A stretch of DNA of 55,681 bases from Octopus bimaculoides (taxonomy: Eukaryota): contig NC_068986.1 in the NCBI RefSeq assembly GCF_001194135.2, positions 45,640,682-45,696,362 on the forward strand, written 5' to 3'. The notes under the pieces were generated by a model that saw only the letters and a program-made list of their open reading frames with translations, was not told the DNA's origin and searched no databases. Positions 167 to 38,744 of this stretch are shown here, piece by piece (the stretch's first letter is position 1; each line of letters begins with the position of its first letter). The position numbers and the translations under genes were made by a program.

Positions 167-261
167 GTATCTGGAGGACGTGTATAAATGTGTTTTGATT
201 CCTAACAATAAATGTAAAATGCCGCCTGACTGGCAGAAAAATTACAAACAGTATGCTTGCG
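167..261 (+). CDS. Exon B0 (second half of a Cys domain), phase 2 to 1
   Basis: ttttactcttcatcag|G TAT CTG...GCT TGC G|gtgagt; [31 protein letters not shown]. Confidence 0.85.
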
Positions 262-2441
262 GTGAGTAGTAAGTTTTTAAAGCAAAATTTAGAATAGTAA
301 TGCGCTAGTGTTTAATGAATACCGTTTAAGAACTTCTCGTTCGTTCAATACTCTATATCACTGTTGTTCAATTTGCAGGACACACAGATACGGGAGAAAT
401 GCCTAGCGGCATTTCTTCCGTCTGTTTACGTTCTGAGGTCAAATTCCCCACAGATTGACTTTGTTTTTCATTCTTTAGAGGTCGAGTACTGGGGTCGAAG
501 TCATCGACTGGTTCACACTCTTTCAAAATTGCTGTCCTTATGCTAAAACTAGACAGAATTATAATACATTGTGAATTGTAAGAGATTGCAAAGTATTAAA
601 ATTGTTTTTTTATTCAACAATCTATTTTCCTATCGAATTTTATTTGAATATTCCAAAGTAAAAGTCATTCTTTATGAATATTCTGCAGTATAAATGTGAT
701 ATTTTTATATTTCAGATAATATATATAAATTAGTCTCTTTTCCCCCCCATTATCTGGTTGCTAAAGGGTGTTTGAAAATCTGCGAAAATGCCAAACGGAG
801 TGCAATTAACGTCAGCTGAGGCAGAAAAAATAATAAAATTACTATCTGAAGGAAAAAATACTCAAATAATCAATTGCAAACATATTGACGCGAGATTACC
901 GCACAATTAAGAAGTTTGTTGCAGACGGCAAGATATCCCATGCTCCTCCGAGAAAGACCAAACCCAAAGCCCTTAAACACCAAGTTGAACGAAAACTTAA
1001 GAATACCACGGGAAAAATCCACATAAAGTGAGTTGTAAGACTTTTGAGGCTGCTGGCATCAACATTCTGCCGAAAAGCATCAGAAATGCTTATCTAAGAA
1101 AGCTTGGTAGTGTCAAAAAGATGGGAATTTCACCTCCCCTTTCGAGAAACTATCAAAAGGTTGTCATCGGTAGAAAAATACATGAAACAAATTTTCCCTG
1201 ATGTCCCATGGACGGACGAGTGTGGAGCAACATTGGATGGTCCAGACGACTGGGATAAAGGTTGGCTGCTTAGTGGACAAAATAACCAAATTTTTATGAG
1301 ACAACAAATGGGAGAAGGGGTAATGTTTTGGGCTGGATTTCTTGGGAGCACAATAATAAGTCCTTTCAGAGTTGCACAAGGAGTTAAAATAAATTCTGTA
1401 AACAATTGTCAATTTCTTAGTGATAATTTCCTTCCTTGGTATCAAAGTCAATCAGCAGAGAAAAGAGCATCGATTATTTTCATGCAGGACAATGCTCCAT
1501 CATACGCCTCAAAATATTCTATGAAGTAGTTGAATGATAATGACATTTCGGAATCCAGTATTATGACTTGGCCGCCAAATAATCCTGACCTTAACCCAAT
1601 AGAGAATTTATGATCCGTCATTAACAGAAAAGCTTATGAGAATGGTAACATTAATGGTAAAACCAGCTTAAATCAATTCGGAGAACAATATCTGATACAT
1701 GCTATAGAGTACCAATGTAACAACTAGAAAATCTTGTCTCTTTGGTTGACAAGAGACTTCTGGAATTGATTAAAATGAAAGGAGGCCGTATTTGGAGATA
1801 TTGAATATAATAATTTGCTATATGATTACTATTCAATTTTGTTCAACTTTCTAAAATATCATACAAAGGTATATTGTCTCTCAAATACATGCTGATATGT
1901 TCAAATAAGCGTTTATTTAGTTTAAAAATTATCTATTTTACATTTGTAAAACTCATGATGGTCAGTATGTAATCGTTAATTCTTCTTATTTGTCCAATTG
2001 TTTTTAACTTGATAATACTGAGAAGTTGTATTTGATACTTTAATTTGCGATACAAATTTCTACGTACTGATGAACACTTTTTTTCATTATTTCCCTTGAT
2101 TTTTTTCTTACTACACCATTTCTTTGCAAATGCATATTCTTTCTGTTTGCAGTGTAGATTCCTCTTTTTATAGTTGAACAGACAAATCTTTTGAGTAATA
2201 CAGTTCTACATTTAAGAGATGAGGAATTATGTACATTATGTACATTATTTACAATTGCCGGATATTTGTCCTCATCTTGTTTGTTGTTAACGCAACGTTT
2301 CGGTTGATATGCCCTCCAGCCTTCATCAGGTGTTTTGGGGGAAATTTCGAACCTGAGTTCTCATTCCTAAGGCCATATGGCGTAGGGGTTAAGAGCGCGG
2401 GCTACTAACCCCAAGATTCCGAGTTCGATTCCAGGCAGTGA

Positions 2442-2497
<56 letters not shown>

Positions 2498-5400
2498 GTA
2501 TGATTCTGCGAATCAGGTGGTCATATTTTAGGGAGTCAGAAATAAATTGAAGTTGTGTATATCAAATGGAAGAGAGACGTGACAATATTGATGCATGTAA
2601 CTTAGAAAACCATTCATGGGGTATTTTGGGTAACGTATATTATGTGATTAGTTTGAAAGTAAAGATAATAGTTTATTCAGGAGTTTATTCAGGAGACATT
2701 TGGAATTTTCGAAATATTTTCAAACTGGCCGAAGAAATATGTTTTTATTGTTTGACAATAGAACGTCTATTTTAAAATAGTAAGTCTCTTTAACCATATA
2801 AGAATATGCTTTCTGGATAGAATAAGTCTACTGAGAAACTTTGTGTTAAGGCTTCTTGCTTCAATGCATTACTATATTTTTTGCAATGTTTTTCCTTTGG
2901 TTAGAACTTACTTGTTGAATGTTCAACATGCAAAAGAATGCTTTTAGGAAATTTTGAGGCCATCAAAGGTCAAAGTGTTATAAAATGAAATGAAAAGTCA
3001 TGACCATTGCTTGTACCATGAAAAAAAAATGTGATGCTATCAAATATCAGTGTGAAGTAAAATATTAATTAACATTGATTAGGAATTGTATAAGCTGGGA
3101 GTGTATAAATTTAATGATTACCATAAGTTTAAGGAACGAATGGCTTTNNNNNNNNNNTAAGTAAAAATTCATTAAAAAGTTCTTCTTCTTCTTCTTCTTC
3201 TTCTTCTTCTTCTTCTTCTTCTTCTTCTTCTTCTTCTTCTTCTTCTTCTTCTTCTTCTCCTCCTCCTCCTCCTCCTTCTTCTTCTAACAACTGTTGCTGT
3301 TGTTTAGCTCCAGGCCAGTACTTTTGGGGAGTAAGCAAGTACAATATTTCTTTTACTGAAAGGATGTTGCTAGGAAAGTGTTCAAATTAAGTTGTATTTC
3401 TGCGTGAATTTATAATAATTTATATCAATTACAGAAAATTCTTGTTATGACATTAAAAAACAAAATTCGTTTAGTATGACAGATGAAGAGAAATGCAAGT
3501 AAGTAATTTTTGTTATGTAAGTACATTGATATGTTTAATGCAATATTATATGATAAATAGTCATCAGTAAAACATGGAAAATATGTTAGTAAATTAGGTG
3601 TGAATAAAATATTAGTGTTCTATTTTAGATGATGAAATTTAGCTTCTCGATGTATTAGTTATGTATTACGCTAGATTTTTGGGAAAATAACTGTTACATA
3701 TCATTGACATGAACACGAACCCAATAAAATATTGATATTACAAAAGTGAAGATTAATAACTATCATCAACCATAGAAGGGCCTATTCTTTTCAGAAAATA
3801 TTCACTTAACAAAATGTTCTTCTAACTTGCACTTCTTGCTAAGTTAAGATAATTAAGAGTCAGTAGAAACATTTTTCAAATAGATTGCAGTGGTGAGAAA
3901 ACATTGGAATCTAGTTTGCTTCTATAATGCACTGTGTAATGGTATAATTTCCCAATGGCAGTTATTGTACTTCATCCAGGACTTATTTTCTAAAGAAATC
4001 TGTTTACCTGTGGTCGAAGTGTTCCCCAAATAAACTAACATCATATTTTATAGGAATTAATTTTTATTTTTCAATTTATCTAACAATTATCTCAATATAT
4101 TAAATATTTCATTGAGATATTATCATCAGCATATCAGAACAGTGGGGGTGATTAAATTTGTAAAAAAATAATAGATCACTAAACCTAAAGACATTCAGTA
4201 TTTAATTTTGTCTTGATACATGATGAGTTAAGATACTGTTGTGAATGGCATTTCGTTTTCACTTCTCTGAAAGTTGATAAAATAAATACAAGTCTTGTCC
4301 TGGAACGAAATATATCAGGTATGGTGTCCTAAAATTATTTGGTTTTAAATAAATATACGATATTATTTTCCTCTTGCCAATTTTGGTTGAAATGGTAAGT
4401 TTACATGATTTTTAAAATTATAAATCCTATTTTTGCACGCTTATTCTATTCACTGTAAACAAGAATATTAACTTCTGGAATAAGCACAAAGTCATTAATA
4501 TTTCGGGCTAAAGTACAGTTGTATCAATCAACCCTACTACATGTCAAGTACTTATCAGATCTAGAAAGAGCTAAGTTGAACATGGATAGATTTAGATTAT
4601 ATCCATAAATACAGTCAGTTCCTTTGTTCTCAGCATTACAATTTATTCCGATCTTTTGCAAGAGAAAATGTTAAATTCTTACTTTAATTGCAATATATTT
4701 TTTAGCGAATTGAACCACCATAAGTCAGAATTAGACAGAGCTAATTGTAATATTCCAAAGGACATAGAAAAAGAATACAAGTCTTTAAAATGTGGTAAGC
4801 TTCTCATCATTTAAATAATTCGGTACTTCTATTTGATGATTGGGCAATTGATGTCTTGCATTCACTTCCTTAAGAAACAAATCTCTCATTCTGATTAGAG
4901 AACTTACTTTATAATAATCTTCAGCCAACATCATTATGATCATATAACTTTAGTTATTTTGAGCCTACATAGCACTTGTTCAAATGTACCAATTTAAAAG
5001 CTCATATTTCCACAAGATTCAATTAATATGCTCAGAAAGTGTTTTGAAAGATGAAGTGAGAGGACATACAAAATAATACAAAATCTATTTTGAATATATA
5101 TCCTAGACAACATGATGTGTCTCTCAATAACTAAAACTTTAAACATATTAATGACATTTCAATACAGACTGCAAATCATGCCCTGTTAATCAACAGCATT
5201 CTGCTTATCATTAAGAACAAAATAAGTAACTAATATAGAAGACGGGAAATTTTGTAACTTCTGCAGGATCTGAACACCTCATGTACTATAAACAATATAG
5301 CTATAGTTACACACTACAGGAATATGGCATCACAACTTTTGAACAATGAAATCAGTACACTTAAATTAAGTGACTACAATGGAATATCAGTGGCCTGTTA

Positions 5401-7780: not shown

Positions 7781-10700
7781 TATCATCATCATCATCATCA
7801 TCATCATCTATCATCATCGTCATCATTGTCATCATCAGTATTTAACGTCTGCCTTCCAAGTCGAGTGAGATTGGTTTCCAAGAAACCATGGAACTGCTTT
7901 CAAAAATATGTTTTTTTGTGATAGAAGTTCATTATTCAACATCAGAATGGATTGTTGGAGCTCAATAAAAAATTAAGAGGATGATTTTATCACCTACGCC
8001 GGAGTAGTCAACCGTACGAGCGAAAGTTTCAAACTCCAGGATCTCACTCAGGATATGTTCAAATCACTTATCTTCGTGCAAGGACTTATAGCACCTAAAG
8101 ATAGAAAAATTCGGGCAAGGTGTCTCTCGAAAATGGAGCAAGTAAACCAGAATTTATCTCTACAGACCATCGCAGAAGAATGTCAGACAACGGTAAATCT
8201 TAATCGTGATGTGAAAAAAATACAAGAGAAAGACTGTAAAAATTCAAATGGGTTGTCCGGGGAGCACAATAAAAAAAGTGTCAGGCCCCAATCCGTGTTA
8301 TTATTATGGAGGCTCATGCTGCAAAAACAATTGTCCGTTTAGAAACAAAGTGGTGCTAAAGTTGTTAGAAGCTGGGACACAGGAGTTCTCATTGCAGAAC
8401 AAAACTACGAGGCTCAAACACAAAAAGTTTTAAGGTGTTTTCAACGGACAGTGATTGCGACGGAAAAAAAAAAAAAAAATCGTGCACGTAAGAATAATGT
8501 GAATACCAAATTACAGTTAGACACAGGTAGTGACATCTCGATTATAGATGCGGATACTTGGAGAAAAAAACTGGTAAACTGAGATTACGTAAAATAGTGA
8601 AAATATGTGTGGTGTAACGGGCGATAAATTACCTTTTGTGGGCAAAACATGTATCGACGCCACATTTCGAGGAGAAACACGCGAAGCAAGATTATTCGTT
8701 GTGGATAATTTAATCAATCTGTTTGACACAGCTTGGTTAGAACTATTAAATTTATGGCACCTTCCCATAAATGTTTACTGCAATAACATAAATGGTTGTC
8801 TCGTTAAAACCAAGTCTTCGGAAGAACTGAAAGAAAAAATGAAAAAAATGTTCCTGCAAGTGTTATCAGAGAATTTAGGTCTATTTCCAAGTAAGTGAAA
8901 ACGCTGTACCTGTATTTAAAGCAAATAGAAAAGTACCGTTCGCAGCAATTGAAACCGTATGTGAAGAGTTGGACAGACTCTACAAGAGTGGAGAATTTAA
9001 AAGGTTGATTACTCGAAGTGGGCGGCACCCGCGGTATGTTAAAAAAGGATTAGCCTATGTGCCGATTTCTCTACAGGACTGAAAGACTGCCTAAAAACAT
9101 ACTACCATCCACTCCCGACAAATTAAAAAGAAGGCCCTAGCAATTATTTTTGCAGTTAATAAATTTCATAGGTTTCTGCATGACAAACGTTTTTTATTGC
9201 AAACAGATCATAAATCTTTGCTGCCGATTTATGGGTCTACAAAAAGGGTTACCGACTCATACTGTGAGCCACATGCAACGTTGGGGAAAAATATAACTTA
9301 ATTATAATTTCAAAATGCAATACATTCCATCCATCGAAAAAAGTCGGTCATGCGAACTGCGTTTCGAGATTAATTTCAAAAAATATGAAACTACTAGAAG
9401 AGACTATAGCTGCACTCCAGGCAGAAAGTGAAATTAAGTGTTATGACGAACATTATCCAAGAACTACCAGTGACGACACAGTGTACAAGAATGAAAGCTG
9501 TAGGTGATGTGTATATTACGAAAATAAAAGAAGCTTTAAAAAATAAACAGAATAAAAATACAGGTGCCAGTAGTTTTTCAATTTGCGATATTCTGATGTA
9601 TGCCCAAAAGTGGTGGTTCTAACCACATTACAAAGAGGTGTATTACAGCAATTTCGCAGCGGACATCCAGGAATGTCAAGGATGGAGGCTCTGATGAGGA
9701 GTTATGTCTGTTGGCCATCTACGGACCGAGGTATCAAAAACTTGGTAAGAACGTGCCGAGGTTGCGCGCTCGTGGTCAAAGCCCCGCCAGTAAAATATTA
9801 GTCGCGGCCAGAGACGGAGAACCCATGGTCTAAATTACACATTGACTATGCCGGACCGGTAGACAGCGTTTACTACCTAATCATAGTAGATAGCTGTACT
9901 AAGTGGTCGGAGGTTTGCAGATGCTATAGACCAACCTCTAAGACAACTATAAAGTTCTTATACGAATTGTTTGCGCGATACGGTGTCCCTGACACGCTAG
10001 TTTCAGACAATGGAACGCAGTTCTCTGGGTATGAATTCAAGAACTTCTGTAAAAGGCATGCAATAAAGCATATTTTCACTCCACCCTACCACACGAGGTC
10101 AAACGGGCAGGCAGAAAGATTTGTGGACGCCTTTAAGAGAGCGTTAAGAGAGGCGAAGAATGAATTAAGTAACGACGAAGCACTGACAAATTTCTTAACA
10201 ATATATAGAGTGACCTCCAATCCAAGTACAAATTCAAGGAATTTTCCTGCAGAATTGATGTTCGCAAGAAGAATAAAATCCATTTTTGATAAGCCATTAC
10301 CAGAGAAAAAAAAGACGTAAAAGAAATACGAAAGAGCCAATGAAATACACTGAGATAAATGATAAAGTGCATTTCAAAACCTATAGAAACTGTAAAGAAT
10401 GTTGGGAAGATGGTTTTGTTACCAGAAAAATTGGAAGTATGATATATCTAATATTCACACACGGTGAACATAAGAAACATATAAACCAACTTAGGAAGAG
10501 GCATACCCAAGAACAGGAAGAAATTCTCGTGAAGGTGTTCTGTGAAGTATTCCATGTACGGGTACCAAAAGTAATAGAGTCCCGTAGAACCAGCATGAGA
10601 AAAAGAAGACAGACGGAACACCTTGAGATAATGTCTAAGCGAAAGAGATACTAATAAATATGTAAATAAATAAATAAATAAATAAGTAAATAAATAAGTA

Positions 10701-12391
10701 AATAGGCGCAGGAGTGGCTGCGTGGTAAGTAGCTTGCTTACCAACCACACGGTTCCGGGTTCATTCCCACTTCATGTCACCTAGGGCAAGTGTCTTCTAC
10801 TATAGCCTCGGGCCGACCAATGCCTTGTGAGTGGATTTGGTAGACGGAAACTGAAAGAAGCCCATCGTATATATGTATGTATATATATGTATATATATGT
10901 ATATATGTGTGTGTGTGTGTGTGTGTCTGTCCCCCCAACATCACTTGGCAACCGAAATTTTAAAAGGGGAGATGTTGTGCGAAAGTACGAGGCCCCATGG
11001 CGAGAATGGACTGGACCACAACATATAAATAGTAGCGGTCCGAGTACAACGACAAGACGTGTAGAGCTATCAGCATAATCAATTATTAAGATTGTTCCGT
11101 CCTTTTCTCTTAACAAGGAAGGGAGGAAAGTTTTTTCTGCATTATAGCCATACTGAAAGAAACAGTATAGAAGACACGCGCGAAAGGGATTGCGAGAGGT
11201 ACCTTTATTTCCAGCCAAGGTCTAGTCACTTACTTAAGTATCACCTTAATAGTAAGATCAGGTTAGAAAACAGATACCTGACGCAAAGCACATTTCGTAA
11301 AAGATGGCAGAATGTGGAAATACAGTTAAGGATGAATGGAGCTGGCATCTAACCGGAATAGAAAGAAACGTCAGTCAACGATGGTGGGCCTATGAGCCCA
11401 GGTAACTTTCACGTGACATGTGTAAATATTTATTTACAATTTTGTTAATCTTTAAATCGACATTTTTAAAATCGAAATTAATTTTTAATCGGAATTTTAA
11501 AAAAAAGGCAAACACGAACTCTCTATGTTTTGTCTGTCCTTGTACTGGCCCCTCTTCGTTATGCCCAGTGTGGCAAAGTTCGTGCTAGTTCCACAGTTCG
11601 TGTGTTGTTAGTTCAAAGCTGGAGTGCAAATCTTACAGTTCGAGTTAGCGCGTTGGATTGTTGGTTCCTAACAGCATGTTGTTACGTTCCGTGTGGTTAC
11701 TGCCGTTTGTTTCGATTATATTGTTATTACACTGTTGCAGTGTATTCATTTATCCAGACGGATATAACAGCTAGACTGAAACATGAATAATTAAATAACC
11801 AATTTGCTTAACGTGATGAAACTGGAACTTAAAACTATTCTCAGTTGCTGCAAATAAAATAAAATAAGGTATTGGCCAGGTTTTGTACTCAAACAAAAGA
11901 GTATACTTTAGGATGTAACATCGATGTCGTTTTGAGGTGTATAACAATTATGTATTACAAGGGAAATGGACTAATATTACTATCAAATCCACAGTTTCAA
12001 CTTGCCAGAAGCCTATCTTATTTTCTAGGGTTTTCATAACTTAAAACCAAAGAAAAAAAAAAAATTTCTGATTTGGAGGAAATTGTTCCTATTGTAGAGT
12101 AAAGTAGTGTTGCTACTGTTGCAATTTTAATTTAATTTCCTCCTGTGCTGTTCATTTCAATGTACAATGTAAATATTCTCTGGAAATATAGAGATATCAG
12201 AATTTTACCATTTTTATCTTTAAAATATTTCTGTTATTGTTTGTACAGTTTTATCATTTGTTTCATTCTAACAAACATGTTATTTCTATATTTTTTGCAA
12301 TATATGCAGACATTCGTTGCAACAAAGCCAGACAGTGCTCCATAACGATACAAGATTATAGTACAAAGGAAATTTGCAAGTAGATATTTCA

Positions 12392-26400: not shown

Positions 26401-29400
26401 GGACCTTTTTCACTACATGTTGTTCTAAACAATCTCTTGTCAATCATTTTTAATGGGTTTGAGCAGATGATCGTAGATGGAGATGCTGTCCATTAAATTA
26501 TTTCTGCTAAATTATGAAGCACCCGAATATCATAAGAATTCACGAATCCAAGTGTTTTTAATAAAATGCCTTATAACGCTCAGAATCATATGTGGAGTAC
26601 CCCAGTGATGTTGTGTGACTTGGATTACTTTTGATTAATGTTTCGAGTAGGTCATCATCAACGATTGAAAGCTTACCGGAACGCTCACTGTTCTCCAGAG
26701 CAAAGTTTTCACTGCTAAACTTAACAAACGACTTACGAAGAGTTCTCCAGCTATGATGCCATTTCCATAAACTGCACATATTGATTTTGCTGTTTGTGCA
26801 GCGTTTTCTTTTACTTGCTGGAAATAAAAGATCACCAAATGAGGAAAATGTATCTGATTTACCCCTATTTTCACTTTTAACGTAAAAACTTTACAAATAA
26901 ACTATCCACACAGTAATCGTATTGAAAAACGTGCTGAAATGTCACCTTTCAGGTAATATATGTCATATGCTTCTTTTCATGTGAAAAACTAAATCGTATG
27001 CTTAAAGTTCATCAAATGAGATACGGCACGAATATTTGTTCCAACCCAATACTTTATATATACGTTTCTAAGTGTTTTTACGAAGCTAGACTAAACATTT
27101 ACTCTTTCAAACTTCTAACTTATATCTCCATGACACGTCATCTGAGGACATTGACTCCAGTTCGACTTCAATTCGTTGAAATCACAGCGTGTCTTTCAAC
27201 AAAGTTTTCGTGGATATGGTCTTGGACCAGTTGTACAGTTTGCTAGTCCCCGTGCAGGATGTTTTTAGGAGGCACCACTTGTGTGGATGGCCGTTCACTC
27301 GCAATAAGCTCCTCCGTCTTTTGACAGGTTTTGTTTTAAGTCCAGCAAAATGTCTACGAATCTCTGTATTACCTGTTTCATGGTTGGATTGTCGGCAACT
27401 AAAACAGCACCTTTTACATGACTGGCGCGCGTACGAGCGCAGACAGACAGACAAACAGATAGACACACGCGTGCGCGCACGCACATACACAAGTACAGAT
27501 TTAAATGCTGATTACTGATTATTGACAAATATTCAACAACTGAACAGCTGAAAAATGTTAAAATAGCCTTGTTGTTATTGGTTTTGTTCACTCCATCTAA
27601 TGCTTTTTGGTCTTGCAGGTACCAGTTGCAATGGTAATGTACTCAATGAATGTGCGGCTACTTTAAAACGGCTACTTAACAGTACAAGGGAAGAACTATG
27701 CGGGTAAATATAGAAACGTTTCTTTCATATATATTTTTCAAATGACGTTCAGCATAACGAATATAACTTTTAAAAAAGAAGCATTCAGAAAAGGATTGGC
27801 ATATCTTGTTTTATTTATACTACTTTTAATATAATGTTATATCTTAATATTTACGAAGTATGGATCATATAAACTAATGTGGTGTTGTAGAAAACTTTAA
27901 GTGCATTCAGTGCGTCTAGAGCAATCCTACTTGGCGGCGGCAATCTGTCTGTTCTCACTTAATATTCATAGAAATATACAAGAAAATATACAAGGAAATG
28001 TTTGTTTCTTATTCTTTCAAGTTTCTGTATTTGTGAAAAGAAATGGAAGGAGAAGAAACTTTACTTGCTAGTATTTTAACCAAATCATCTGAAATACCAA
28101 ACAAGTTAATTTAAAGTATATAGTAAGAAATAGCATATCATCCCACAAATTTCATAGATGTTTATCTTTTCTTGGACAGAGGCTTGGCAGAATCATTAGA
28201 GCATCCAAATAAAATGCTTTGCATTACTTTTCTGAATCTTTAGGTTTTTATTTCAAATCATGTTGAGGTAAACTTTCCTTTCCATCACCCCAGAGTTGTT
28301 GGTGTACAGTATGGGAAAGACCTCCCGTCACAAAGCTCTCGAGCTATTGCCCATGTTTGTAGTTTTAAAGAACGGGTTGGATGATTTGACGGTTTCACCA
28401 GTCCTCAGTCAAATCGTCCAACCCATGCTAGCATGGAAAGCGGACGTTAAACGATGATGATGATGATGATGATGTTATTAGTATTTTTGTTGCACCGTCT
28501 CGTTAATCAGCCAACTAGCTATCTTTCTGAAATTTTCGCGCCCTTTGGGAATAGTTTCAGAATTTATTGGTAAAATTACATATTTAAAACGGAAGAAAAA
28601 GGAAAATTGCTCCATAACTGGCCTTGGGTATGAAAATCCATTTAGTTCGAGGAAGGTGCTTCGGCACAATTGAGGCAGGGTCCCCAAGTAAAGAATACGT
28701 TAAAGAGAATTCTACCACTACTTTAAAAAGCGATGATCCCAACATACCTAAATCGGTGTGTCTTGTGTAAGTAGACACCTCCTTACTTGTTGCTGCCGTA
28801 TTATATTACATAGAAAATAAAACAAGCAAGTCCACTGACTGGAAATAAAAAATTGGACAAGCACAGAAATGGAATTAATAATTCAGACCGACTATGAAAG
28901 CTGGATCAACCTCTCAACTGGCTTGTAGGTTTTCATAGCAGTTCAGGATGGAAGGTGTGATGCCACATGTGTAGCCATGTAGACAATGTAAAAGCATTCA
29001 GCTCACTGCAAAAAACAGAAAGATAATTCCATTACAACAAATATATCAACAACAAAAACAGCAGCATCAACAACAACAACACAAACAGAAGCAGTACCAA
29101 GAACAGTATTAAGAGTAGAAGCACCAAAAACAACTGTTGTGTATGCACTTGTGCAATACCCAAACACTGCTGACTTGCGAGTTTATGTTGAATACCTGTT
29201 GTTGCATGTAGGAGTTTCCTTGTGAGGATCGTCCCGCGTCTTCCTTTGACCGAAAAGTACATTCAGTGTTTATCTGTCTGGTGAGCAAGAGATGAATGAT
29301 GAGCTAGAATGAAAGGGCTGAAATAGATTTCTTACTCTTTAACCAAGTCATCATCAACTTCTTAAGATCCACTTGTAAAGAGAAGTGAGGGTGGAAAGAA

Positions 29401-32400
29401 GGGTGGAAAGAGAAGTGCTGCCTTCCAGCAAACTTCTTTGAACGGTGGTTGAGATTGGTAAGAATGATTCAATCGAAGAATCTGTTCTGAACACATTTCT
29501 ATAAACTGAGGGAGGAAATGACTAGCAAAAAAGATGTTAACGGTGTCGCTAACATGTGGCGAATGTAAAGAAGGTTAATTTCTCTACTGTTGCAAGAGCT
29601 GAAACATACCTAATATTTCCAAACCAGTGTTGCTAAGACAGTATTCTCTAGCATCCAACAAAAGATCCGAGGGATGCAGAAAGAATTATTTCTAGGTGTA
29701 TTGTTCATTGTTCTGAAGGTCAGAAACCAAATTAAAAAATATCTTAAACGAATTCGGGTCACCAACATTTCGAGGGAAATTTTCGGCACGAATGAGTTGA
29801 GATTTGCGACCAGCGAAGAGAACAGGAGGAACTCTGTAACACTCCTAATGAGTGACCAACTTATTGTCGGCTGGAGAACATTAAAAATAAAGGCGGTCTA
29901 TCTGTCACCAGAAATAAATATCTGCTGGTTATGAACATATTTTAATCTCACTGGCTGCAAAAGCAAATTTGACCTGGTCAAGGGATGGAATTATCGGTCC
30001 AAACTGATCATGAAAGTAAATAGCTCATCTTAAACTTAATCAGTCTATCAGGTGACTTGCACCTTTTCGTGGTGATTGAAAGCAGAAAGACAAGGTGTTA
30101 CCTACTTGGTCAAATAAGCCATCTAAGAATTTTCTACCGATAGCAAAAGAGGGGAGAAGCAAAGCATTCGCCACTACAGCCAATGCCATTACCATTGCAG
30201 TAGTTCCATCAAGAACAAAAACAGCAACAATGTCAACAATAGGAACACCACCACTACTACTAACACCATTAACAACAACAACAACCACAACATTAAAATC
30301 AGCAAACGCAAAAGCAAGAACAAAAACAATGTCAGCCACAATATCAACAACAGAAGCAACCACAAAAATATCATCGATAATCTCATGAGAAGAACAACAG
30401 CAGCGGGAAGAGGAACAACATCGTCAATATCAGCAACAAAATCTGCATACTCCAACAAAATATCACGTTTCTCAGATATGGTCTTCACTGAGGGTGTTGA
30501 AAAAGAAAAAAGAAAAGAAAAGAAAACTGTTTCCATATGAATGGAAAGAAAGAGGAAAAGGACAAACTAAATCTGCCCTCAAAAAATGGTGATTTTAAGG
30601 CAGGAAAATACTCCACATTACAACACCAACAAAAACTCCACCACAACCACCACCAACAACACTGCAGAACCACAATTAACAGGATCTCAAATCAATCTAC
30701 AATCTACATCCGAATCAACAACAGAAACACCGCAATAAAAGGCATAAAGTACACAGCTATAAATACAGGTAACAAAAAAGTAATGGACAACATAATCAAC
30801 ACAAACATTAAACACAATGACTACAGCACATCAACAAATAACATATACGCAAACAAATTCTAAACACAACACAAGAAATTTATAACAAACTAAACACAAA
30901 ATATTTTGACTCTATGGGAAATTTCTGATGTACAATAACAAAACAAATTGCAAAAATTTACTTGTGGAAACAAACTACTATTAAACGGAAGAATGAATTG
31001 CCTGCCCTACAAGAATTTAGGTAGCGGCCACTCACTTTCCTTTTTTATTATAAGCACAACCTTTACAGTTTTCATACTCTAAATTCTTCCTATTTCAAAG
31101 TTTAAAGGATTGAATTTTCTGTTTTTCTTCCCCTTTATTTATAATCCTGGTATCAAACAGACATGATGAATCAATTAGTAAGCAACTTCACATTTCCTTG
31201 TCTATTTTTGTTATATCTGGTCTATTATTTTTTTAGCTTCTTGTTCATTTAAGTAGGAAAGTACCACAAAATCTTATATTTCTCCGACTCCTGCTCTCTT
31301 TCGACTCGACGATTTTACCATGTTTTATTGCTTCAAATCCCTAGTTCTGGTAAAGTTTCCTGTGTAAAATTGTTACAACTTGGTCATCCCTCCATTTCTT
31401 ATACTCTTGCTGTGCCAACTTGAGACATTTTGCAACAATGTGTGCCACTGTCACGTTCCAAACTCCATAGACTCTATACTTTTTTGACACATTCTCTCCA
31501 TATTCATTTTCCCATATGTTGTTTGATTTAATCGCTTGATCCTGGACTGCTTCAATTAGGCCCTCTCTGTCTTTTCTAATTGCCCCTTTTTTTTAACCAA
31601 GCCCACAATTTTGTTTCACATACATCCTCAGCAGTTCTCCAAAATTGATCTTGCAGAGGGATCTCTTCAATCTGTCTAACATGCTCTCTTTGAATTTCAT
31701 TATTCTCCTTTTCTCCTATTCCACACTTGATCACTGGCTCCTTATTCACTGCTTTTAGTAATTTCTCTGTGCTCTGTAAATATTCTAGTTGGCTTTTTCT
31801 TTCCGACTGTACACACTCTTCCACAGCATTTAAACCTCTTTCACCCTGGCCTGTTCGTGTACATTCGGTTGATATCTTTAGGATGGTGGACTCCTTCTGT
31901 ATGTCGTTTTTGGTCCATTCTCCAATTCCAACTCAATATCTGATTAGGGGCACATTTTTTTAATTCACCTTTGACTGTTACAATTTTCTCACTTTCCTTG
32001 TATTCTCACTGATGGTAATTTGTTTCATTTACCCAAATACTTGTAGCACTGTCCTTTCTCAACCGGTTTCTTTGCTTGCCCATTTAGCATATCATTTACC
32101 TGGCTTCCTTCAAATCTTCTTCGTTTCTTCAACTTAGCGCATTTTTCGATTCCAAATTCCAAACCTAGATGATTTGAGAAAATGCGAACAGTAAGTACAA
32201 GACTTTCAAGCTGTTTCTCATTTTTCGCATAAATCATTAAATCACCCATAAAAAGGAAATGATTTATCTGACCATATACTTTTCCCAAATCGTAAGCTAT
32301 TTTGAGCGGTATAGTAATGGAGATAAGCTTTCCCCTTGAAATATTCTGCCTATGATGTTCACCTTAGCAAGCCTTTGTTTTTCTCCAATCAATTCAGTAT

Positions 32401-32901
32401 TCTAATGCTTTATATTTCCATTAACCATTTTCACCATATTTTCTACTACTCTAAACAAGCTAATTTTTTTACTTATCCAACTGAGTGGTACCGTGTCTTA
32501 TGCTGTTTTTGTAATCTAACCATGCTACATTCTGTCCCGTCAATCTGCGTCTCCAATTTCTAATCTTCAATTTATTTTGCTCTACTTCGTTTCCTGCATC
32601 CATTCTGCTCTGATGGAAGTAGATTGTTACTTTCTATGATGAGTATATAGCTTTTCTACCAAAACACCAGTTATAAACTTTCACATTAGCGGTAAACAGG
32701 TTATAGGTCGAAAATTCGATGCCAAGTTCCCTTTCAAGGGATCCTTGAGTCATAACAACGTTCGTCTACTTGTCATCCAGGTAGGGACGGACCATGCTGC
32801 AGGCATTCATTCAGCTGTGCAGTGATACTTTCATGCAGCTATGTAAAATTTTTCAGTCAGTAGCTTTGTACTTCATATCGTCGTCGTCGTCATCATCATC
32901 C

Positions 32902-32946
<45 letters not shown>

Positions 32947-35072
32947 ATATCGTCATGGGGAATTGATTTAAGCATCGGTGGAAGGACTAACAAAATACCT
33001 TTCGATATTTAATCATTTTGTTTAATCCAGAATTGGAATAGCATCAAGCTTGAATTTGCTGTTTTCTTTCAGGCGTTGATGTGAAATAAATAGCAGTCAA
33101 GTACTCGGAGCAATTTGAAACCAAGTGGGCCATATCTAAGGAAATATTGCCATAAAAATTTTCTCCATCTGTTTGTTTGTTTATATCCATTGATGCATCT
33201 AACAAAAATTTTTTAAAATTTTCTCCTAAATGTCCACGCTTCTTTTTAGACTTTTAGTTGGCCCTTGTTTCTTATGTTCTGAGTAGTATAAAACTTTCCC
33301 TTCATTAGTCCAAAGTTACTGTGGTGTTTCAAAAAAATGGGAAGGTGTATATTATATGGATGCATGGACTCCAGGGAAATATGTTTTGTGTATCACTTGT
33401 AATACACAGGACAGACAAAGGGTTATTTGCAGGAGCACGAGGAAAACATTGTGAATATTGTCAACTAAGTTTTACTGCGCATTATATCGATTCAACAATA
33501 TTTTTTTAAATCTCTTCCTAGATATTATAGAGAAGAAGGCAGATGTAATGACAAAGCCAAGTGCAAGATGGAAGAAAAATATATGAAACTTTTTGAATGT
33601 AGTGGTAAGCAGTTCCTTATTTATTCTAAGGCATAACTAAGGCGATTAGCTGTGTGGTTAATGCGAAAATGAGGTGAATTAAATTGTAATGTATGCAATT
33701 TAACATAAAAACATAAAAAGGATCCGATACCGACTCTGCGCATTATCACTTACTAACACGCAAGTTATTACCTCTTCCCTGACACATAAAACCTTTTATG
33801 TATATCCGATCTCTGACATCTAGGTAACATCTATGCTCCATTTATGTATCTCTCAGCTCGATATAAGGGAAAAAGACTTGCAGTTACTCTGACACAAAGG
33901 TTTCCGATTGTTCCTACAACTCTCTGATCTGTTCCAACTACCATTAACTATTCATTTCCTCTCCACTCTCTCGCTCTGTCTCTCTTTAGCATCAAAGACA
34001 TCTTACATTATCGCTTCTAAAGTCATGATCGTCAGTGACTTCAATATTCACAACCTCCCTTGATCTAATCGTTAACCTCACAACGACACTGTTATTACAG
34101 AAGCCGACTCATTTGCCATTCTGAACTTTCTGCAATAATAAGTAGGCTGCGACTTCAAGAGCATTTAGCAGTTATTTCTCGCAGCAGAAACAACTGTGTA
34201 GAGGTTCCTTCATTAGCACGTAACAAAAGCCACAGCATATACTTGCATATTCGACCAGTACACACTCACAAAACATCCTTAATTCCTTTCTCACATTTAA
34301 ATCCAATGTTTACCAAACTATTACCATTCCTGCATCTATCGAGTCATCCAGCTACCACTTCATCAAAGCAACTTACCACATATCCCCGACTTGCACAATA
34401 CCATCATCATCTTCTAAACTCTCTGGCATTTCATCCCTTCGTGTCACCCAACTGGTCGTAGTTCGTCAATTGTGATTATCTAAGTAGCAAATATCCCGTC
34501 ACATCTGTCATACAAAGCTATTGAAGTTCGCAAAAAATAGCCCACCCAACCAATCAGAATTTGATATAAGAAACATATCTATCCACTCTACCAGCGTATT
34601 CAGTGCTATATCAGATAATGTTTACACTGTAAAAAATATTTTAATATCCTTTACAACTCTTATTTTGCAATGCAAGTGAGTATGTATGTATGTATGTATG
34701 TATGTATGTATGCATACTTCCTACACTAAAGAGTACATTGATATATATAAATAAATAATTTATTTATTTAATTAATTTAATCTAATTCAATTCAATCATG
34801 AATTTGCATTTTTTTATATACGAAACGATCGTCTAGATGAATTAAAATTCTCTTATATATTTTAACAACTTGTCTTCTATATTTTTGACAAAATTGATGA
34901 GCTTTATGGGATTTCTTTCCATAAATTTACCACACATCATATATAAGTATTATTTTCATATACGCAAATTTACGCCTGTAAACTACCAGCAAAATATGAA
35001 GAATCAACATTAGAAATCCTTTATGGAAACCTCCAAATTAAAGGACGAATCTACATTCAACCTTTTTACACC

Positions 35073-35890: not shown

Positions 35891-38744
35891 AAGATAAAAA
35901 GGGAAAGATTTAGAAATGTCTGGGGTTGTGGGAAGATTAATGGTCTCATACGGCTCATGTGATTATACGAAGCAGACACCAGTCTTTACCGTTAGGTGGG
36001 TATTGACCACTGTCTTACATCATACTTTCCGTTCATAGGGCCAAGATGTGAAAATCTTCACGCTGAAGTTCAAGAATATATACGGATAAAATGTATTAGG
36101 AGGATAAGCTTCTTACGCAATACAGAATCAGCACCTCTGGTTACTTTTGAAATCAGTTCTGCATTGTTCTTATCAATAACTATCAGATATCGTACGTCGT
36201 AGCCTTCTCTTTCGAAAGGCATATGTACTTGACTGTCATCGTGACCCTTATGTACGACGGTGGAAAATGCTTTCTGCCTGATTCTCTCCTAAATTCTCTT
36301 CCACTTTCATATATATGTATGTAGTTAGTACCTGCGTTAGTACACGCACACACACATACACACAAACACACACACACATACATACGTACGCGCGCACACA
36401 CGCACAAACATACGCTCACACACGCACAAACATACGTGCACACACGCACACGCATACATATGGGGAAAGTTTTTCTAGATATGTATCCATTATGTATATG
36501 TGCGTGTATGTATGTGTTTGTATCACTGTCTACTACCTCTATCTTTCTCAGTTTCTCTCTCTCTTTGTCTACCTTTCTCTCTGTCTCACACACATATGTA
36601 CATGTATATATATNNNNNNNNNNNNNNNNNNNNNNNNNNNNATATATATATATATATAACACCATCTTGAAAAAAGTCAAATATTAAAATGTTCCCATAG
36701 CCTTCGAATGATACCGAGACAAATTCTTTCAAGGACAAACCAGTGATCCCCAGATATATTTCGGTTAATTACAACACTCTACTGATTTGGCTATAGTTTC
36801 CTAATATATAACTTCACTAGTTGGTGCCATTAAGTACACATGGTCTTGGATAAATACTGGATGAACCCAATCTAAGTTGTCTATATTAATTTTCTTTTCA
36901 TTGCCAGAACATTAAAAGCCATCTTAAGAACTCTGTGCACCAATTCCATTAGTGTTGGAAATCTTATTATAACTAGTAATTACAGTTCGTCCGTCCGTCC
37001 GTCCGTCCGTCCATCCATCCATCCATCCATCAACCTTCTGCAAACGAATTTGTGCAGACATACATACTTCTTTACTTTTCAAATTTTAGCTCCTAACTAC
37101 GTAAGCATCCAAAGTAGTGGCTGATCCTAATTTGAGAATTTCGCTTAATTTGGAGCCATACTTAACTTATACTATCTCAAGATTGAGATATACCCGACCC
37201 CTGGATTTAGAGATAGTTTATTGCTTATTTTTAAGGCAAATGAATTTGTGTTAAGAGTTGAAACAATTTTTAACTGGAAAACTGTTTTGTTGATGTTATG
37301 CTGTAAAAAAAAAGGACTCACATTGGATTTCCGGAGATCAAACATGGCCCACTTGAGTCTTAGGCCATTATGCGATAACTACTAATTCCAGATCTAAAAA
37401 TTTTCACTGTCTGAATTTTGATAATATAATAGACATTTGTGCTTACTATCAAAATGTATCGAACTAATCAGCTGAAATTGCTGTATCGGATGCTAAAATC
37501 CAAAATAATCTTGCATTTCGAAGTATGTTTTTGCATGTTTGGACTTGGCGACATGGCAGAATTGTTAGCACACAGGACAAAATGCTTCGCAGCATTTCGT
37601 CCGTCTTTACGTTCAGAGATCACAATCCGCCGAGGTCAGCTTTGCCATTCACCCTTTCGATGAAGTAAGTACTAGTCGAATAACGGTGTCGATGTAATCG
37701 ACTAGGCCCCCGCACCCCCAAGTCTCAGGACAAGTGCCTATAGTAGAGGAGATTATAATTTATTTGTAGTGTATTCGTGGAATAGGCCGCATGTATCAAG
37801 TTTCACAGGTTGAAAGTGTCTCAATCTTTAGACATTAGATGTTAAATATAGCTTCAAATTTAGTAAAATCCTCAAATACGGTTCAGCACACTATTTTGAT
37901 TACTCATAAAAATCAGTATCATAGTTAGGAGATAAAGTATTTAAGATTGACTACATACAAAGACCATGTCACTTTGGACAAATTTCCAGTAATTTGGGAG
38001 ATCATCTTTCAAGCCTGGTTCACATTTATCTAGAACACCCCTGGGTTAAAATCCGAATATTTAATTATTCCTGTAGACATGATAGCGATTTTAACTCGAT
38101 TCACTTGAAATCACTTTTCATGATGGCTTATCCTATGTTAGTTATACAATATAGTTGTCTAAACTATATTGTCATACTGATTCATACTTTCTGACATTCT
38201 TGTTTTTTGTTTTAACATAATCACATCGCGTTGAGTTCATTAGTTTGTAGTGTCTTGATTTTTCGATTTTGAATTTGAATTTTTTTTTTTTATATAAAAT
38301 CTTTGATCTGAAACTCTATTGAAACGTAATGTTTGAGAAGAGCCATAATTAGTAAAAGTTATAAATAATCTCATCAGCTTTTGTTTATCTATTGTTCACT
38401 TCTTTTTATTTTTCCAACGCAGTTGTTTGTTTATGACCGCAAAAAATATTTTTTACATCACCCTGCACATTTTTAAATGCTTGGATTTTAGCAAGCATAA
38501 ACAAACAACAAAGGCTTTCAAAGAAAGAAAAAAGGTAGTGAAATATAAACACACAACAACCAATGATTTGATTTACAGACTTTATTAAATGTGACACTTC
38601 TTAAAGAAAACAAAGTTACATTGATGTTGACATATAATTTGTTTTTCTTTTGTAGGCGCTGCAAATCGGAGTACAATGTTCGCCGTCATATTTTCGTTTT
38701 TATTAGCAGTTCAGATGCTAGAGAAATATATTTCTCTTTCTTAA
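167..38744 (+). CDS. Spliced gene (5' end lies upstream of the window): tandem Cys-rich-domain protein, predicted GPI-anchored. Exons 167-261, 3435-3498, 4706-4794, 12310-12379, 18736-18824, 27619-27703, 33522-33604, 38656-38744
   Basis: All eight exons have AG acceptors with pyrimidine tracts, the seven internal exons have GT donors, and phases are compatible. The 664 nt join without stops into [220 protein letters not shown]. Cys spacing repeats from domain to domain. Confidence 0.85.
392..555 (+). mobile_element. SINE family A (tRNA-headed), degraded
   Basis: aaatgcctagcggcattt...acgttctgaggtcaaatt...ctggggtcga; same family at 13065-13320, 18945-19015, 37545-37755 and 53670-53830. Confidence 0.7.
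788..1805 (+). mobile_element. Tc1-like (DD37E, TRT-type) transposase pseudogene
   Basis: Motifs [29 protein letters not shown] and [14 protein letters not shown]; 37 residues between the second D and the E; stops and frameshifts; TIRs not identified. Confidence 0.85.
2205..2372 (-). mobile_element. Penelope-type terminal-repeat fragment carrying a hammerhead motif
   Basis: Same sequence family as 18-125; contains a CTGATGA...GAAAC core on the minus strand. Confidence 0.55.
2289..2334 (-). ncRNA. Minimal type I hammerhead ribozyme motif
   Basis: Minus strand: AACAC-CTGATGA-A-GGCTG(gagggcatat)CAACC-GAA-ACGT-T-GCGTT. The core is intact, stem III is palindromic (ACGT), and stems I and II have one mismatch each. 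Confidence 0.6.
2379..2497 (+). mobile_element. Short tRNA-derived SINE with (AAT)n tail
   Basis: A-box-like ggcgtaggggttaag, B-box gagttcgattcc, then (aat)n at 2446-2497; the acceptor stem does not pair. Confidence 0.7.
3181..3284. repeat. (TTC)n/(TCC)n microsatellite
   Basis: Seen directly; it produces the spurious poly-Glu ORF 3129-3344. Confidence 0.95.
3435..3498 (+). CDS. Exon A1 (first half of domain 1), phase 1 to 2
   Basis: ttacag|AA AAT TCT TGT...AAA TGC AA|gtaagt; (E)[20 protein letters not shown]. Confidence 0.85.
4706..4794 (+). CDS. Exon B1 (second half of domain 1), phase 2 to 1
   Basis: tttttttag|C GAA TTG...AAA TGT G|gtaagc; [29 protein letters not shown]; 89 nt, same length as B2. 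Confidence 0.85.
6011..6680. repeat. MITE-like duplication: direct repeat of flank plus TIR, with the core inverted
   Basis: 6011-6112 matches 6362-6463 directly. 6075-6291 matches the reverse complement of 6462-6680. A 38-bp TIR pair lies at 6426-6463 and 6643-6680. Confidence 0.8.
6700..7755 (+). mobile_element. Mariner transposase pseudogene
   Basis: [21 protein letters not shown] (HTH region), [18 protein letters not shown] (YSPDLAPSD-like) and C-terminal KVVGQN..YV; heavily disrupted. Confidence 0.85.
7752..7835. repeat. (CAT)n microsatellite
   Basis: Seen directly. Confidence 0.9.
7865..10655 (+). mobile_element. Gypsy/Ty3 (K02A2.6/Mag-like) LTR retrotransposon internal region, degraded, RT core deleted
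   Basis: gag (LIFVQGL and a degenerate CCHC), protease [12 protein letters not shown] at about 8510-8545, RT start CADFSTGL joined to RNase H ALAIIFAV at about 9117, integrase HHCC (GHPGM...CRGC) and core DYAGP / VSDNGTQF / SNGQAERFV. Confidence 0.92.
10702..10957 (+). mobile_element. SINE family B with internal (TA/TG)n, inserted upstream of the Gypsy PPT
   Basis: ggcgcaggagtggctg...ggttccgggttca...gggcaagtgtcttctactatagcc...tggatttggtagacggaaactg. Confidence 0.8.
10973..11768 (+). repeat. Probable 3' LTR of the Gypsy element
   Basis: PPT AAAAGGGGAGA is directly followed by TGTTGTG at 10973. The candidate end is ...GATATAACA at 11768; an alternative end is 11418. No second LTR is available to confirm. 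Confidence 0.5.
12310..12379 (+). CDS. Exon A2 (first half of domain 2), phase 1 to 2
   Basis: ttttttgcaatatatgcag|AC ATT CGT TGC...ATT TGC AA|gtagat; (D)[22 protein letters not shown]; the donor is weaker than the others. Confidence 0.8.
12392..12538 (-). mobile_element. Very short LINE 3'-end insertion (probably R4/Dong-like) within (TAA)n, with an inverted 18-bp end
   Basis: (tta)n on both sides; perfect inverted repeat 12482-12499 / 12509-12526; family assignment is inferred. Confidence 0.5.
13065..13320 (-). mobile_element. SINE family A, tandem fragments (head/tail/body/tail)
   Basis: cgaccccgaaaggatgaaaggcaaagtcgacctcggcggaatttgaactcagaacgta; the tail motif tttctttatgcccac-like occurs twice. 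Confidence 0.8.
13340..13890 (-). mobile_element. L1/Tx1-like LINE ORF2 C-terminal fragment
   Basis: [26 protein letters not shown] (CCHC zinc knuckle of L1/Tx1 ORF2); homologous to 39600-40000. Confidence 0.8.
13959..16579 (-). mobile_element. Full-length hAT (Buster/Charlie, ZBED5/SCAND3-like) DNA transposon
   Basis: TIRs CAGGAGTTTTCAAACT and AGTTTGAAAACCCCTG (15/16 match); 8-bp TSD CTCTATTG at 13951-13958 and 16580-16587; subterminal cggacccc repeats. Confidence 0.96.
14190..16003 (-). pseudogene. hAT transposase, frameshifted into four ORF pieces
   Basis: BED finger [55 protein letters not shown] and C-terminal [15 protein letters not shown]. Confidence 0.92.
17398..17832 (+). mobile_element. 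3' terminal region of the Penelope-like element, after the gap
   Basis: Follows the GIY-YIG ORF on the same strand and contains a hammerhead-like motif; continuity across the N gap is assumed. Confidence 0.55.
17710..17745 (+). ncRNA. Minimal type I hammerhead ribozyme motif with an A6U core variant
   Basis: CTTT-CTGTTGA-A-GAGC(GTAG)GCTC-GAA-ACGT-T-AAAG: stems I and II pair perfectly, stem III is palindromic, and there is one substitution relative to CUGANGA. Confidence 0.55.
18736..18824 (+). CDS. Exon B2 (second half of domain 2), phase 2 to 1
   Basis: tattgcag|A ACA CTG...GGG TGT G|gtaagt; [29 protein letters not shown]. Confidence 0.88.
18945..19410. mobile_element. Cluster of SINE fragments (family A head, minus; family C, plus; family B, minus) with (CA)n/(TG)n
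   Basis: Matches 13065-13320, 54000-54210 and the reverse complement of 10702-10860. Confidence 0.65.
19432..19711 (-). repeat. LTR (280 bp) of the second Gypsy element
   Basis: Termini TGTTATGA...TCACAACA. On the minus strand it is preceded by PPT AAAAAAGGGAAGG (19712-19724) and followed by TTAT-TGGCGAC (PBS-like, 19421-19431). Confidence 0.8.
19712..22780 (-). mobile_element. Second Gypsy/Ty3 (K02A2.6-like) internal region, degraded
   Basis: RT ([24 protein letters not shown]), RNase H ([14 protein letters not shown]...[13 protein letters not shown]), integrase ([28 protein letters not shown]); same family as 7865-10655. Confidence 0.92.
22789..22959. repeat. About 108-bp tandem repeat running into an assembly gap
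   Basis: ggtttaaaaatcttatccct...tcaaatatcatcatttcta at 22789 and again at 22897. Confidence 0.8.
23500..26160 (-). mobile_element. CR1/L2-group LINE (APE-RT), degraded, with internal duplication and deletion
   Basis: APE region ([15 protein letters not shown]), [42 protein letters not shown] and C-terminal [20 protein letters not shown]; the RT core is missing. Confidence 0.8.
26170..27051 (-). mobile_element. Mariner element (5' TIR plus N-terminal half of the transposase), same family as 6700-7755
   Basis: 5' end TATTGGGTTGGAACAAATATTCGTGCCG (reverse complement of 27024-27051); [11 protein letters not shown]; [22 protein letters not shown]. Confidence 0.82.
27120..27420 (-). mobile_element. 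Fragment of a different mariner-like transposase
   Basis: LVADNPT.. HTH-like segment and a degenerate VTGDESWIY-like motif (SSDDVSWRY). Confidence 0.45.
27619..27703 (+). CDS. Exon A3 (first half of domain 3), phase 1 to 2
   Basis: tttttggtcttgcag|GT ACC AGT TGC...CTA TGC GG|gtaaat; (G)[27 protein letters not shown]; contains an N-S-T sequon. Confidence 0.88.
28310..28475 (+). mobile_element. SINE 3' end with (GAT)n tail
   Basis: aatcgtccaacccatgctagcatggaaagcggacgttaaacgatgatgatg. Confidence 0.7.
29400..29940 (+). repeat. Unclassified interspersed repeat; an inverted homolog lies at about 40400-41000
   Basis: [39 protein letters not shown] versus RNQIEKCLK..SREMFSTDEVRFLTSENRRHSVTLQMSDQ. 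Confidence 0.7.
31040..32620 (-). mobile_element. R4/Dong-like LINE (RT plus restriction-like endonuclease), degraded
   Basis: [19 protein letters not shown] (FMDD-like), [27 protein letters not shown]...LID. Confidence 0.82.
33522..33604 (+). CDS. Exon B3 (second half of domain 3), phase 2 to 1
   Basis: tctcttcctag|A TAT TAT AGA...TGT AGT G|gtaagc; [27 protein letters not shown]. Confidence 0.88.
37545..37755 (+). mobile_element. SINE family A
   Basis: ggcagaattgttagcac..aaaatgctt..catttcgtccgtctttacgttc..cgccgaggtc. Confidence 0.75.
38656..38744 (+). CDS. Terminal coding exon encoding a GPI-anchor-like signal
   Basis: gtttttcttttgtag|GC GCT GCA...TCT TAA; phase 1 matches B3; (G)[28 protein letters not shown]. 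Confidence 0.8.

Follow-up and report, generated by a model that had tools for sequence, protein, structure and literature searches.

Micro-exons of a cysteine-rich octopod gene diverge faster than their introns on a constant cysteine scaffold

The stretch of Octopus bimaculoides DNA analyzed here (the window: 55,681 nucleotides (nt) of contig NC_068986.1, part of chromosome CM046606.1 in GCA_001194135.2) carries, between positions 167 and 38744, what comparison with Octopus sinensis identifies as exons 7–14, the 3' part and last two-thirds, of the 14-exon gene LOC128248134, whose product is built from tandem cysteine (Cys) units. Between the two Octopus species, the Cys-bearing exons of this gene and of its two paralogues differ more than the introns that flank them, with every Cys retained and the signal-peptide and tail exons conserved. 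Because the Cys exons outpace the introns while these elements are held constant, the pattern indicates diversifying evolution on a fixed disulfide scaffold and not decay. New here are the finding that coding exons change faster than introns, the architecture of units and micro-exons, the apparent restriction of the family to octopods, the failure of the GDNF/GAS1 label that two paralogues carry in UniRef, and several corrections to existing annotation.

Exons and their divergence between species

Exons were located through their Cys motifs and splice-site logic, and all coordinates are window positions. Each exon is listed below with its number in the 14-exon family layout, U1–U6 denoting the six units of the full protein and a–f the cysteines within a unit.

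E1 (family exon 7), 167–261, plus strand: 95 nt, second half of Cys unit U3; phase 2 in, phase 1 out; AG/GT borders; equivalent to O. sinensis exon 7 (locus sequence L002 44284–44375)
E2 (exon 8), 3435–3498, plus strand: 64 nt, first half of U4, lacking Cys b; AG/GT
E3 (exon 9), 4706–4794, plus strand: 89 nt, second half of U4, lacking Cys d; AG/GT
E4 (exon 10), 12310–12379, plus strand: 70 nt, first half of U5; AG/GT
E5 (exon 11), 18736–18824, plus strand: 89 nt, second half of U5; AG/GT
E6 (exon 12), 27619–27703, plus strand: 85 nt, first half of U6, with an N-S-T sequon that is invariant in the family; AG/GT
E7 (exon 13), 33522–33604, plus strand: 83 nt, second half of U6; AG/GT
E8 (exon 14), 38656–38744, plus strand: 89 nt including the TAA stop, tail with a putative glycosylphosphatidylinositol (GPI) attachment signal or short membrane anchor

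The AG acceptors of all eight exons are preceded by a pyrimidine tract, GT donors follow E1–E7, and the joined exons form a single open frame of 220 amino acids (aa) that is 100% identical, over 100% of these 220 aa, to the RefSeq 'uncharacterized protein LOC128248134 [Octopus bimaculoides]' (243 aa). In O. sinensis, the orthologue LOC115213476 (380 aa) shares all eight exons and their order (92/64/89/73/89/85/83/89 nt), an agreement we judge to be far above chance; its locus contains no N and resolves into 14 GT-AG exons. The original prediction, made from the letters of the window, had proposed that eight micro-exons splice in frame into 220 aa, and the AG/GT borders, the RefSeq identity, and the O. 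sinensis exons confirm it. It had also reported these exons as absent from the list of open reading frames (ORFs), with the last one present in the wrong frame only. This agrees with the list of ORFs of at least 60 aa, none of which covers any of E1–E7, the one over E8 (38591–38803) being in a different frame. The gene had been called hidden on these grounds; ORF lists do miss it, but it was already annotated in RefSeq as LOC128248134.

Divergence was measured between O. bimaculoides and O. sinensis, with one haplotype per species, in three orthologous pairs called A, B (the window gene), and C.

Pair A: Cys-domain exons 8.9%, well-aligned flanking introns 6.1%; ratio 1.45; Fisher p = 1.8e-3; Cys kept 32/32
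Pair B: Cys-domain exons 19.9%, well-aligned flanking introns 6.7%; ratio 2.95; Fisher p = 1.7e-20; Cys kept 19/19
Pair C: Cys-domain exons 19.9%, well-aligned flanking introns 7.1%; ratio 2.81; Fisher p = 2.9e-31; Cys kept 32/32

When all flanks are included for pair B, the intron value is 7.0%, the ratio 2.83, and p = 1.5e-19; a collinear intron alignment of ~13 kb gives 7.5% mismatches, and introns are 93% identical between the two species. The nonsynonymous distance (dN) of the window gene is 0.255 against an intron distance of 0.074, and 40% of its codons are replaced versus the ~16% expected from drift at the intron rate, with multiple nucleotide changes in 29 of the 75 replaced codons. 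Across the three pairs, identity outside the cysteines is 56–79% with all cysteines kept, and conservation between species extends to exon 3 and to the exons for the signal peptide and the tail. E8 is 96% identical in nucleotides to its O. sinensis counterpart, and tail exons as a group reach 96–98% between species versus ~80% for neighboring Cys exons.

Two other sources of the exon excess were considered and rejected. Gene conversion between paralogues does not fit, as the orthologue is the nearest relative for every exon but the 64-nt exon 8, nor does a purely mutational origin, for example through hard-wired RNA editing or CpG change, as neither the transition/transversion ratio nor the share of A<->G changes in exons is above that in introns. 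Exon 8 itself (E2, 3435–3498) is 67% identical between the O. bimaculoides and O. sinensis copies of gene B, the former being 75% identical to gene A and the latter 77–78% identical to gene C, which could be noise in 64 nt or a small conversion event.

Family, unit architecture, and gene models

Two word-indexed searches with growing alignments saturated at a family of seven proteins, three from O. bimaculoides (the window gene, LOC106871163, and LOC106882236), three from O. sinensis (LOC115213476, LOC115212988, and LOC115213072), and one from Argonauta hians (Ahia01_001118700). The window product matches the family at E = 1e-104 to 5.5e-145 and its relatives at 45–63% identity, and 48 columns are invariant over the 220 aa, every Cys included. 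In both Octopus species the genes form a tandem cluster on one chromosome in the order and orientation A(+), B(+), C(-), with the window gene as the middle member, B. Orthologue pairs have 100% bootstrap support, and the Argonauta protein is equidistant from all three paralogues at ~45% identity. An exhaustive HMMER search of 1.84 billion representatives returned the octopod members and one weak outlier, EukProt g1403.t1 (E = 1.5e-7), so that the family appears from these searches to be restricted to octopods. The original prediction had suggested a lineage-specific cephalopod molecule; the lineage-specific part holds at the level of octopods (Octopus and Argonauta). In the literature, no paper was found that mentions any of the six LOC identifiers, and a topical search likewise gave no relevant match.

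Like the octopod proteins, the outlier g1403.t1 combines tandem Cys repeats (five of them) with a signal peptide and a C-terminal hydrophobic tail, and it has in common with unit 6 the core C...L..P.N.T....C.Y[YF].....C (hhalign P = 8.7e-5). It differs in that its units hold eight cysteines in 75 aa with a C-x-C, and the match spans only ~34 columns; it is at most a possible homologue of the octopod family.

The six Octopus genes have a common exon layout of 52, 88, 89, 70–79, 92, 76–85, 92–107, 64–67, 89, 70–82, 89, 85, 83, and 89 nt, with GT at all donors and intron phases that strictly alternate 1,2,1,2. Exon 1 encodes the signal peptide, the exon pairs 2+3 to 12+13 encode six phase 1-1 units of ~55 aa each (U1–U6), and exon 14 encodes the tail. 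Every exon ends just after a Cys, and within each unit the phase-2 intron follows the third Cys. The number of cysteines per unit runs 4-6-6-4-6-6 from U1 to U6. No member has Cys b or d in U4, and U1 is without Cys a and e. Because the missing cysteines go in these pairs, the likely disulfides, if pairing is within units and conserved, would be a-e, b-d, and c-f (1-5, 2-4, and 3-6). The 3.5 six-Cys repeats originally predicted for the window are borne out in full for U5 (E4+E5) and U6 (E6+E7), with U4 falling short at four cysteines and E1 forming half of U3; similarly, one of the instances quoted for the fifth-Cys motif [NK]A[KN]C in fact reads RANC.

An NSTxE.CGY motif in unit 6 is invariant across the family. 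In profile comparison U3–U6 are mutually related (P = 3e-4 to 0.014), and U1 and U2 resemble them solely in the placement of cysteines and introns. The 4-6-6 repeat of Cys counts suggests a block duplication of U1–U3 into U4–U6, but this idea found no support: U1-U4 and U2-U5 do not outscore the other pairs, and U3-U4 scores best.

Assembly gaps bear on the gene models at both ends. Seven gaps of N lie within the window gene, all of them intronic and 278–4136 nt from the nearest exon edge, and the product is collinear with its gap-free orthologue, with indels of one residue only. Given these intronic positions and this collinearity, no exon is concealed in the gaps and the frame is independent of their length. 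Directly upstream of the window start lies a gap of 1,370 N (locus sequence L001 8533–9902), with a further gap of 4,120 N upstream of it. The O. sinensis orthologue has six further exons upstream, for a signal peptide and another 2.5 units, its exon 6 lying 15.5 kb upstream of exon 7. The 5' extension to a signal peptide that had been proposed is therefore seen in the O. sinensis orthologue, which has the signal-peptide exon, and not in the window gene, where gaps lie upstream.

The first 23 codons of the RefSeq model read as follows.

99–166, plus strand: start of the RefSeq model; 4/68 mismatches to O. sinensis intron 6 (3' end), spliced out in the O. sinensis model

This is an intron-like rate of divergence, and in all likelihood the model here translates the last part of intron 6 and passes through the E1 acceptor, because exons 1–6 are missing from the assembly. 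We thus take the RefSeq LOC128248134 model to be 5'-truncated at an assembly gap, and the E1 boundary of the original prediction to be the conserved one.

An inverted repeat spans window positions 5–109, with 49-nt arms at 5–53 and 61–109 that are 88% complementary around a 7-nt loop; it lies in the intron, ~58 nt before the E1 acceptor. It includes the ATG of the RefSeq model, is conserved in O. sinensis intron 6, and could be a remnant of a miniature inverted-repeat transposable element or a hairpin near the 3' splice site.

In gene A of O. bimaculoides (LOC106871163), the tail exon falls exactly within a gap of 232 N (L003 59593–59824), with the result that the current RefSeq model ends ...ECSGK and an older model has a non-homologous last exon; the tail-less gene A model is an assembly artefact. 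Three annotation problems are corrected by these comparisons and those below: the intronic start of LOC128248134, the LOC106871163 tail exon lost in a gap, and the GDNF/GAS1 label.

Fold and likeness to known domains

Pfam scans of the window product, its six relatives, and g1403.t1 found no GDNF (PF02351), DUF19 (PF01579), or zf-CCCH domain at E<=10, with sub-threshold noise only (Imm50, PAF, DUF5124, GCHY-1), and a PDB search with the whole-protein profile gave 0 matches at E<=10. AlphaFold2 models, one for the window product and one for the full orthologue, contain helices only, approximately three per unit, with a pLDDT (predicted local distance difference test) of 57–66. Foldseek gave non-significant matches to generic helical repeats, with no GFR-alpha among the top 50. 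No known fold family is assignable to the octopod units. Of what had been supposed about the domain, its small helical Cys character is consistent with these all-helical models at their low to moderate confidence, and the statement that no family could be assigned is upheld by the absence of any Pfam match at E<=10 and of any confident match to a characterized family. The likeness to GFR-alpha or DUF19 domains that had been loosely drawn was not substantiated by Pfam, profile, Cys-pattern, or Foldseek tests.

With a profile of a single unit (A4, built on U2, U5, and U6; window E6–E7, 27619–33604), the PDB search returned only CCCH zinc fingers, at E = 3e-4 to 9e-3. The likeness to TIS11/tristetraprolin fingers consists of the C-x8-C-x5-C spacing, which corresponds to Cc-x8-Cd-x5-Ce of the unit, and a T.ELC..[YF].E.G.C...[AG]KC string. 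Unlike those fingers, however, the octopus relatives have signal peptides and six cysteines per unit. A TIS11-type zinc finger was rejected: the ligand His is present at x3 in 1/20 occurrences, Pfam zf-CCCH is unmatched, and the relatives are secretory. We judge the similarity in spacing to be probable convergence.

Proposed role, membrane anchor, and alternatives

We propose that the product is exported, carries an N-glycan at the invariant NST of unit 6, and remains attached to the external surface of the cell membrane, with GPI as its most likely anchor. Each unit would be a small helical module held by up to three disulfides, and the protein a rigid membrane-tethered array of six such modules, in which change spares the cysteines, some motif residues, and both the signal and the tail exon while helix surfaces are replaced far above the neutral rate. 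The exposed surfaces may bind a fast-changing partner, for which a ligand from a pathogen or symbiont, a partner in gamete or mate recognition, and a conspecific cue are candidates. A role for this tethered array in recognition, adhesion, or decoy is the reading that we favor, with some reserve, and the recognition, adhesion, or decoy function of the original prediction would fit with diversifying evolution.

GPI-anchored families of the Ly6/uPAR and Juno types are often lineage-specific, tandem, and fast-evolving, with roles in immunity or fertilization. The octopus protein would be a functional analogue in having small disulfide-fixed modules tethered to the membrane, although their folds (three-finger beta in Ly6/uPAR, the folate-receptor fold in Juno) are unrelated to the octopus units. 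In snake phospholipase A2 (PLA2), conotoxins, and abalone lysin, mature-protein exons outpace introns while the Cys framework, signal, and terminal regions are kept. The octopus Cys exons likewise outpace introns with cysteines and ends conserved, but unlike these accelerated venom and reproductive proteins the octopus product would be large, tethered, and six-unit and not a small secreted toxin. Such a signature is typical of molecules at evolutionary interfaces, including immunity, fertilization, and symbiont or conspecific recognition. Coleoid cephalopods have many lineage-specific genes of unclear role, and interface molecules of this kind are almost unknown there, which makes the gene a testable candidate.

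A hydrophobic, signal-like N-terminus is present in the five full-length relatives, and in every member with a tail the last Cys is followed by exactly 31 residues. In order, these comprise [SND][GA]A[AV][SN], a short polar spacer, 13–14 apolar residues, and QMLE[KR]YIS[LF][ST]; the tail reads C-S-G-A-A-N-R-S-T and then continues with the apolar run. The small residues and the brief hydrophobic segment behind them agree with a GPI signal, and we consider a GPI anchor rather probable, although the conserved polar end is atypical for such a signal.

Several points weigh against an exported, GPI-tethered, and directionally diversifying protein. Cleaved GPI signals are usually poorly conserved, and this tail is unusually conserved for one; moreover, its final residues, E[KR]YIS[LF][ST], match a YxxPhi sorting motif. 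Structure models are of low to moderate confidence, and no PDB structure reached E<0.001 in Foldseek. Exons 1–6 and the signal peptide of the window gene were not found in the 9.9 kb upstream, of which 57% is N and which stops short of their expected site, so that this copy may not be intact. By the Nei–Gojobori method (NG86), dN/dS is ~1.1, with a range of 0.86–1.08 over pairs, a value near 1 that arises because the synonymous distance (dS) is raised too (0.235). The silent excess lies at twofold sites, where NG86 undercounts opportunities, and fourfold sites are intron-like (1/28 in pair B). Part of the signal could thus come from old allelic lineages or another process and not from simple directional positive selection.

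Alternatives to the proposed protein concern its anchor and its kinship. It is possible, with clearly lower probability than GPI attachment, that the gene encodes a type I membrane protein whose cytosolic tail is very short and bears a YxxPhi motif, that is, a surface protein that is endocytosed or directed to lysosomes. Paralogues with 45–65% identity elsewhere, Argonauta included, all keep the segment VQMLE[KR]YIS[LF][ST] unchanged, its YIS[LF] fits YxxPhi, and the tail exon shows no synonymous change in pairs B and C. Yet at 13–14 residues (17 with QML) the apolar run would make a short helix for the plasma membrane, the conserved small residues S/N/D-G/A-A-A/V that immediately follow the last Cys resemble an omega site, and there is no basic stop-transfer cluster. 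GFR-alpha serves RET or NCAM, and GAS1 serves Hedgehog, as ligand-presenting co-receptors, and a divergent GFR-alpha/GAS1 GPI-linked co-receptor that presents a secreted ligand to a signaling receptor would account for the 'GDNF/GAS1 domain-containing protein' name that UniRef gives to two O. bimaculoides paralogues. We regard this kinship as unlikely. The two groups are alike in being extracellular, multi-domain, Cys-rich, and all-helical (by prediction in the octopus proteins), with a GPI-type C-terminus, and the best hhalign path, itself non-significant, sets the octopus C-x5-C on C2-x5-C3 of GFR-alpha. Against these likenesses, PF02351 is unmatched at E<=10 in every member, hhalign of single units or of the whole family against GFR-alpha1 D2–D3 gives P = 0.16–0.38 and a probability below 1% (with a shallow profile of GFR-alpha1 sequences from three species, taken from PDB matches), a D2/D3 hidden Markov model (HMM) scores -10 to -27 bits on members, and PDB searches with whole-protein and single-unit profiles list neither GFR-alpha nor GFRAL at E<=10, as Foldseek lists no GFR-alpha among its top 50. 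GFR-alpha-like domains are defined by 10 cysteines per domain (PMC3527400). That arrangement, 10 cysteines per 80–100 aa with a C-x-C, is absent from all members, which have six or four per ~55 aa and no C-x-C (0 regular-expression matches, with both control domains, GFR-alpha1 D2 and D3, recovered). The evolutionary tempo is also very different, and in our own estimation conserved developmental co-receptors would not be expected to outpace introns threefold. The UniRef label was not reproduced by Pfam, profile, or Cys-pattern tests, and a very remote GFR-alpha/GAS1 relationship, although conceivable, finds no support in any of these comparisons.

The rates admit other explanations as well. 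Under balancing selection at a hyperpolymorphic locus of the major histocompatibility complex (MHC) or allorecognition type, exon lineages would be ancient and introns homogenized by recombination. This is improbable in our view, if a little less so than the co-receptor. It would account for the excess of exon over intron divergence in all three genes and for the raised silent differences in exons (NG86 0.19–0.22 vs 0.07–0.12), which directional selection alone does not predict, and the kilobase introns between micro-exons would permit recombination between exons. However, only one haplotype per species was compared, fourfold-degenerate sites are not elevated (1/28 in B), and the orthologue pairs are reciprocally monophyletic with symmetric long branches, a topology equally expected under continuing directional or diversifying change. 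A bolder proposal, which we hold to be about as improbable, is an octopod-specific recognition locus built on an undescribed three-helix, six-Cys module, in which balancing or arms-race selection would maintain divergent allelic lineages per micro-exon while introns are homogenized; if true, the three-gene cluster would be an invertebrate analogue of MHC-like, allorecognition, or gamete-recognition loci. Neutral drift of decaying or functionless copies is by far the least credible reading. The NG86 ratios of 0.86–1.08 and the window copy's lack of a demonstrable 5' end speak for it, but exons are faster than neutral introns and not equal to them, and 83/83 Cys columns are kept in the three pairs, for which the chance in pair B alone, at the observed non-Cys identity, is ~0.56^19, or ~2e-5. 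In addition, six genes retain all their reading frames and 13 GT-AG introns with the phases unbroken, the Argonauta protein model is homologous, and the signal and tail exons are conserved. We therefore retain diversifying evolution of a tethered Cys scaffold as the preferred reading.

As a whole, the window consists of eukaryotic DNA rich in AT (37% GC); it contains microsatellites, pieces of retroelements, and 8 N gaps, and Rfam and tRNA scans of it gave no matches. Its other features are as follows.

9583–10320, plus strand: integrase core of a long terminal repeat (LTR) retroelement (PF00665, E = 1e-7), intronic
14190–16041, minus strand: adjacent ORFs of 90–210 aa, of which the three scanned (138, 173, and 210 aa) have no Pfam match at E<=0.001
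21259–21486, minus strand: reverse transcriptase-associated RNase H (PF17919, E = 3e-16) of an intronic LTR-retroelement fragment
47720–48478, minus strand: 252-aa ORF with an internal tandem duplication of ~75 aa and no Pfam match

The ORFs at 14190–16041 may be remnants of hAT/ZBED-type transposases, which their sequences resemble. In the ORF at 47720–48478, the stretch that occurs twice reads ...TVSADxWIYPTAIRQSSTKQCQNTGRVHTERFHRPVHISDCSCLPGGLEQFNLSFLQVSYEAFGLHEPASLG..., and this ORF is probably a repeat element downstream of the gene.

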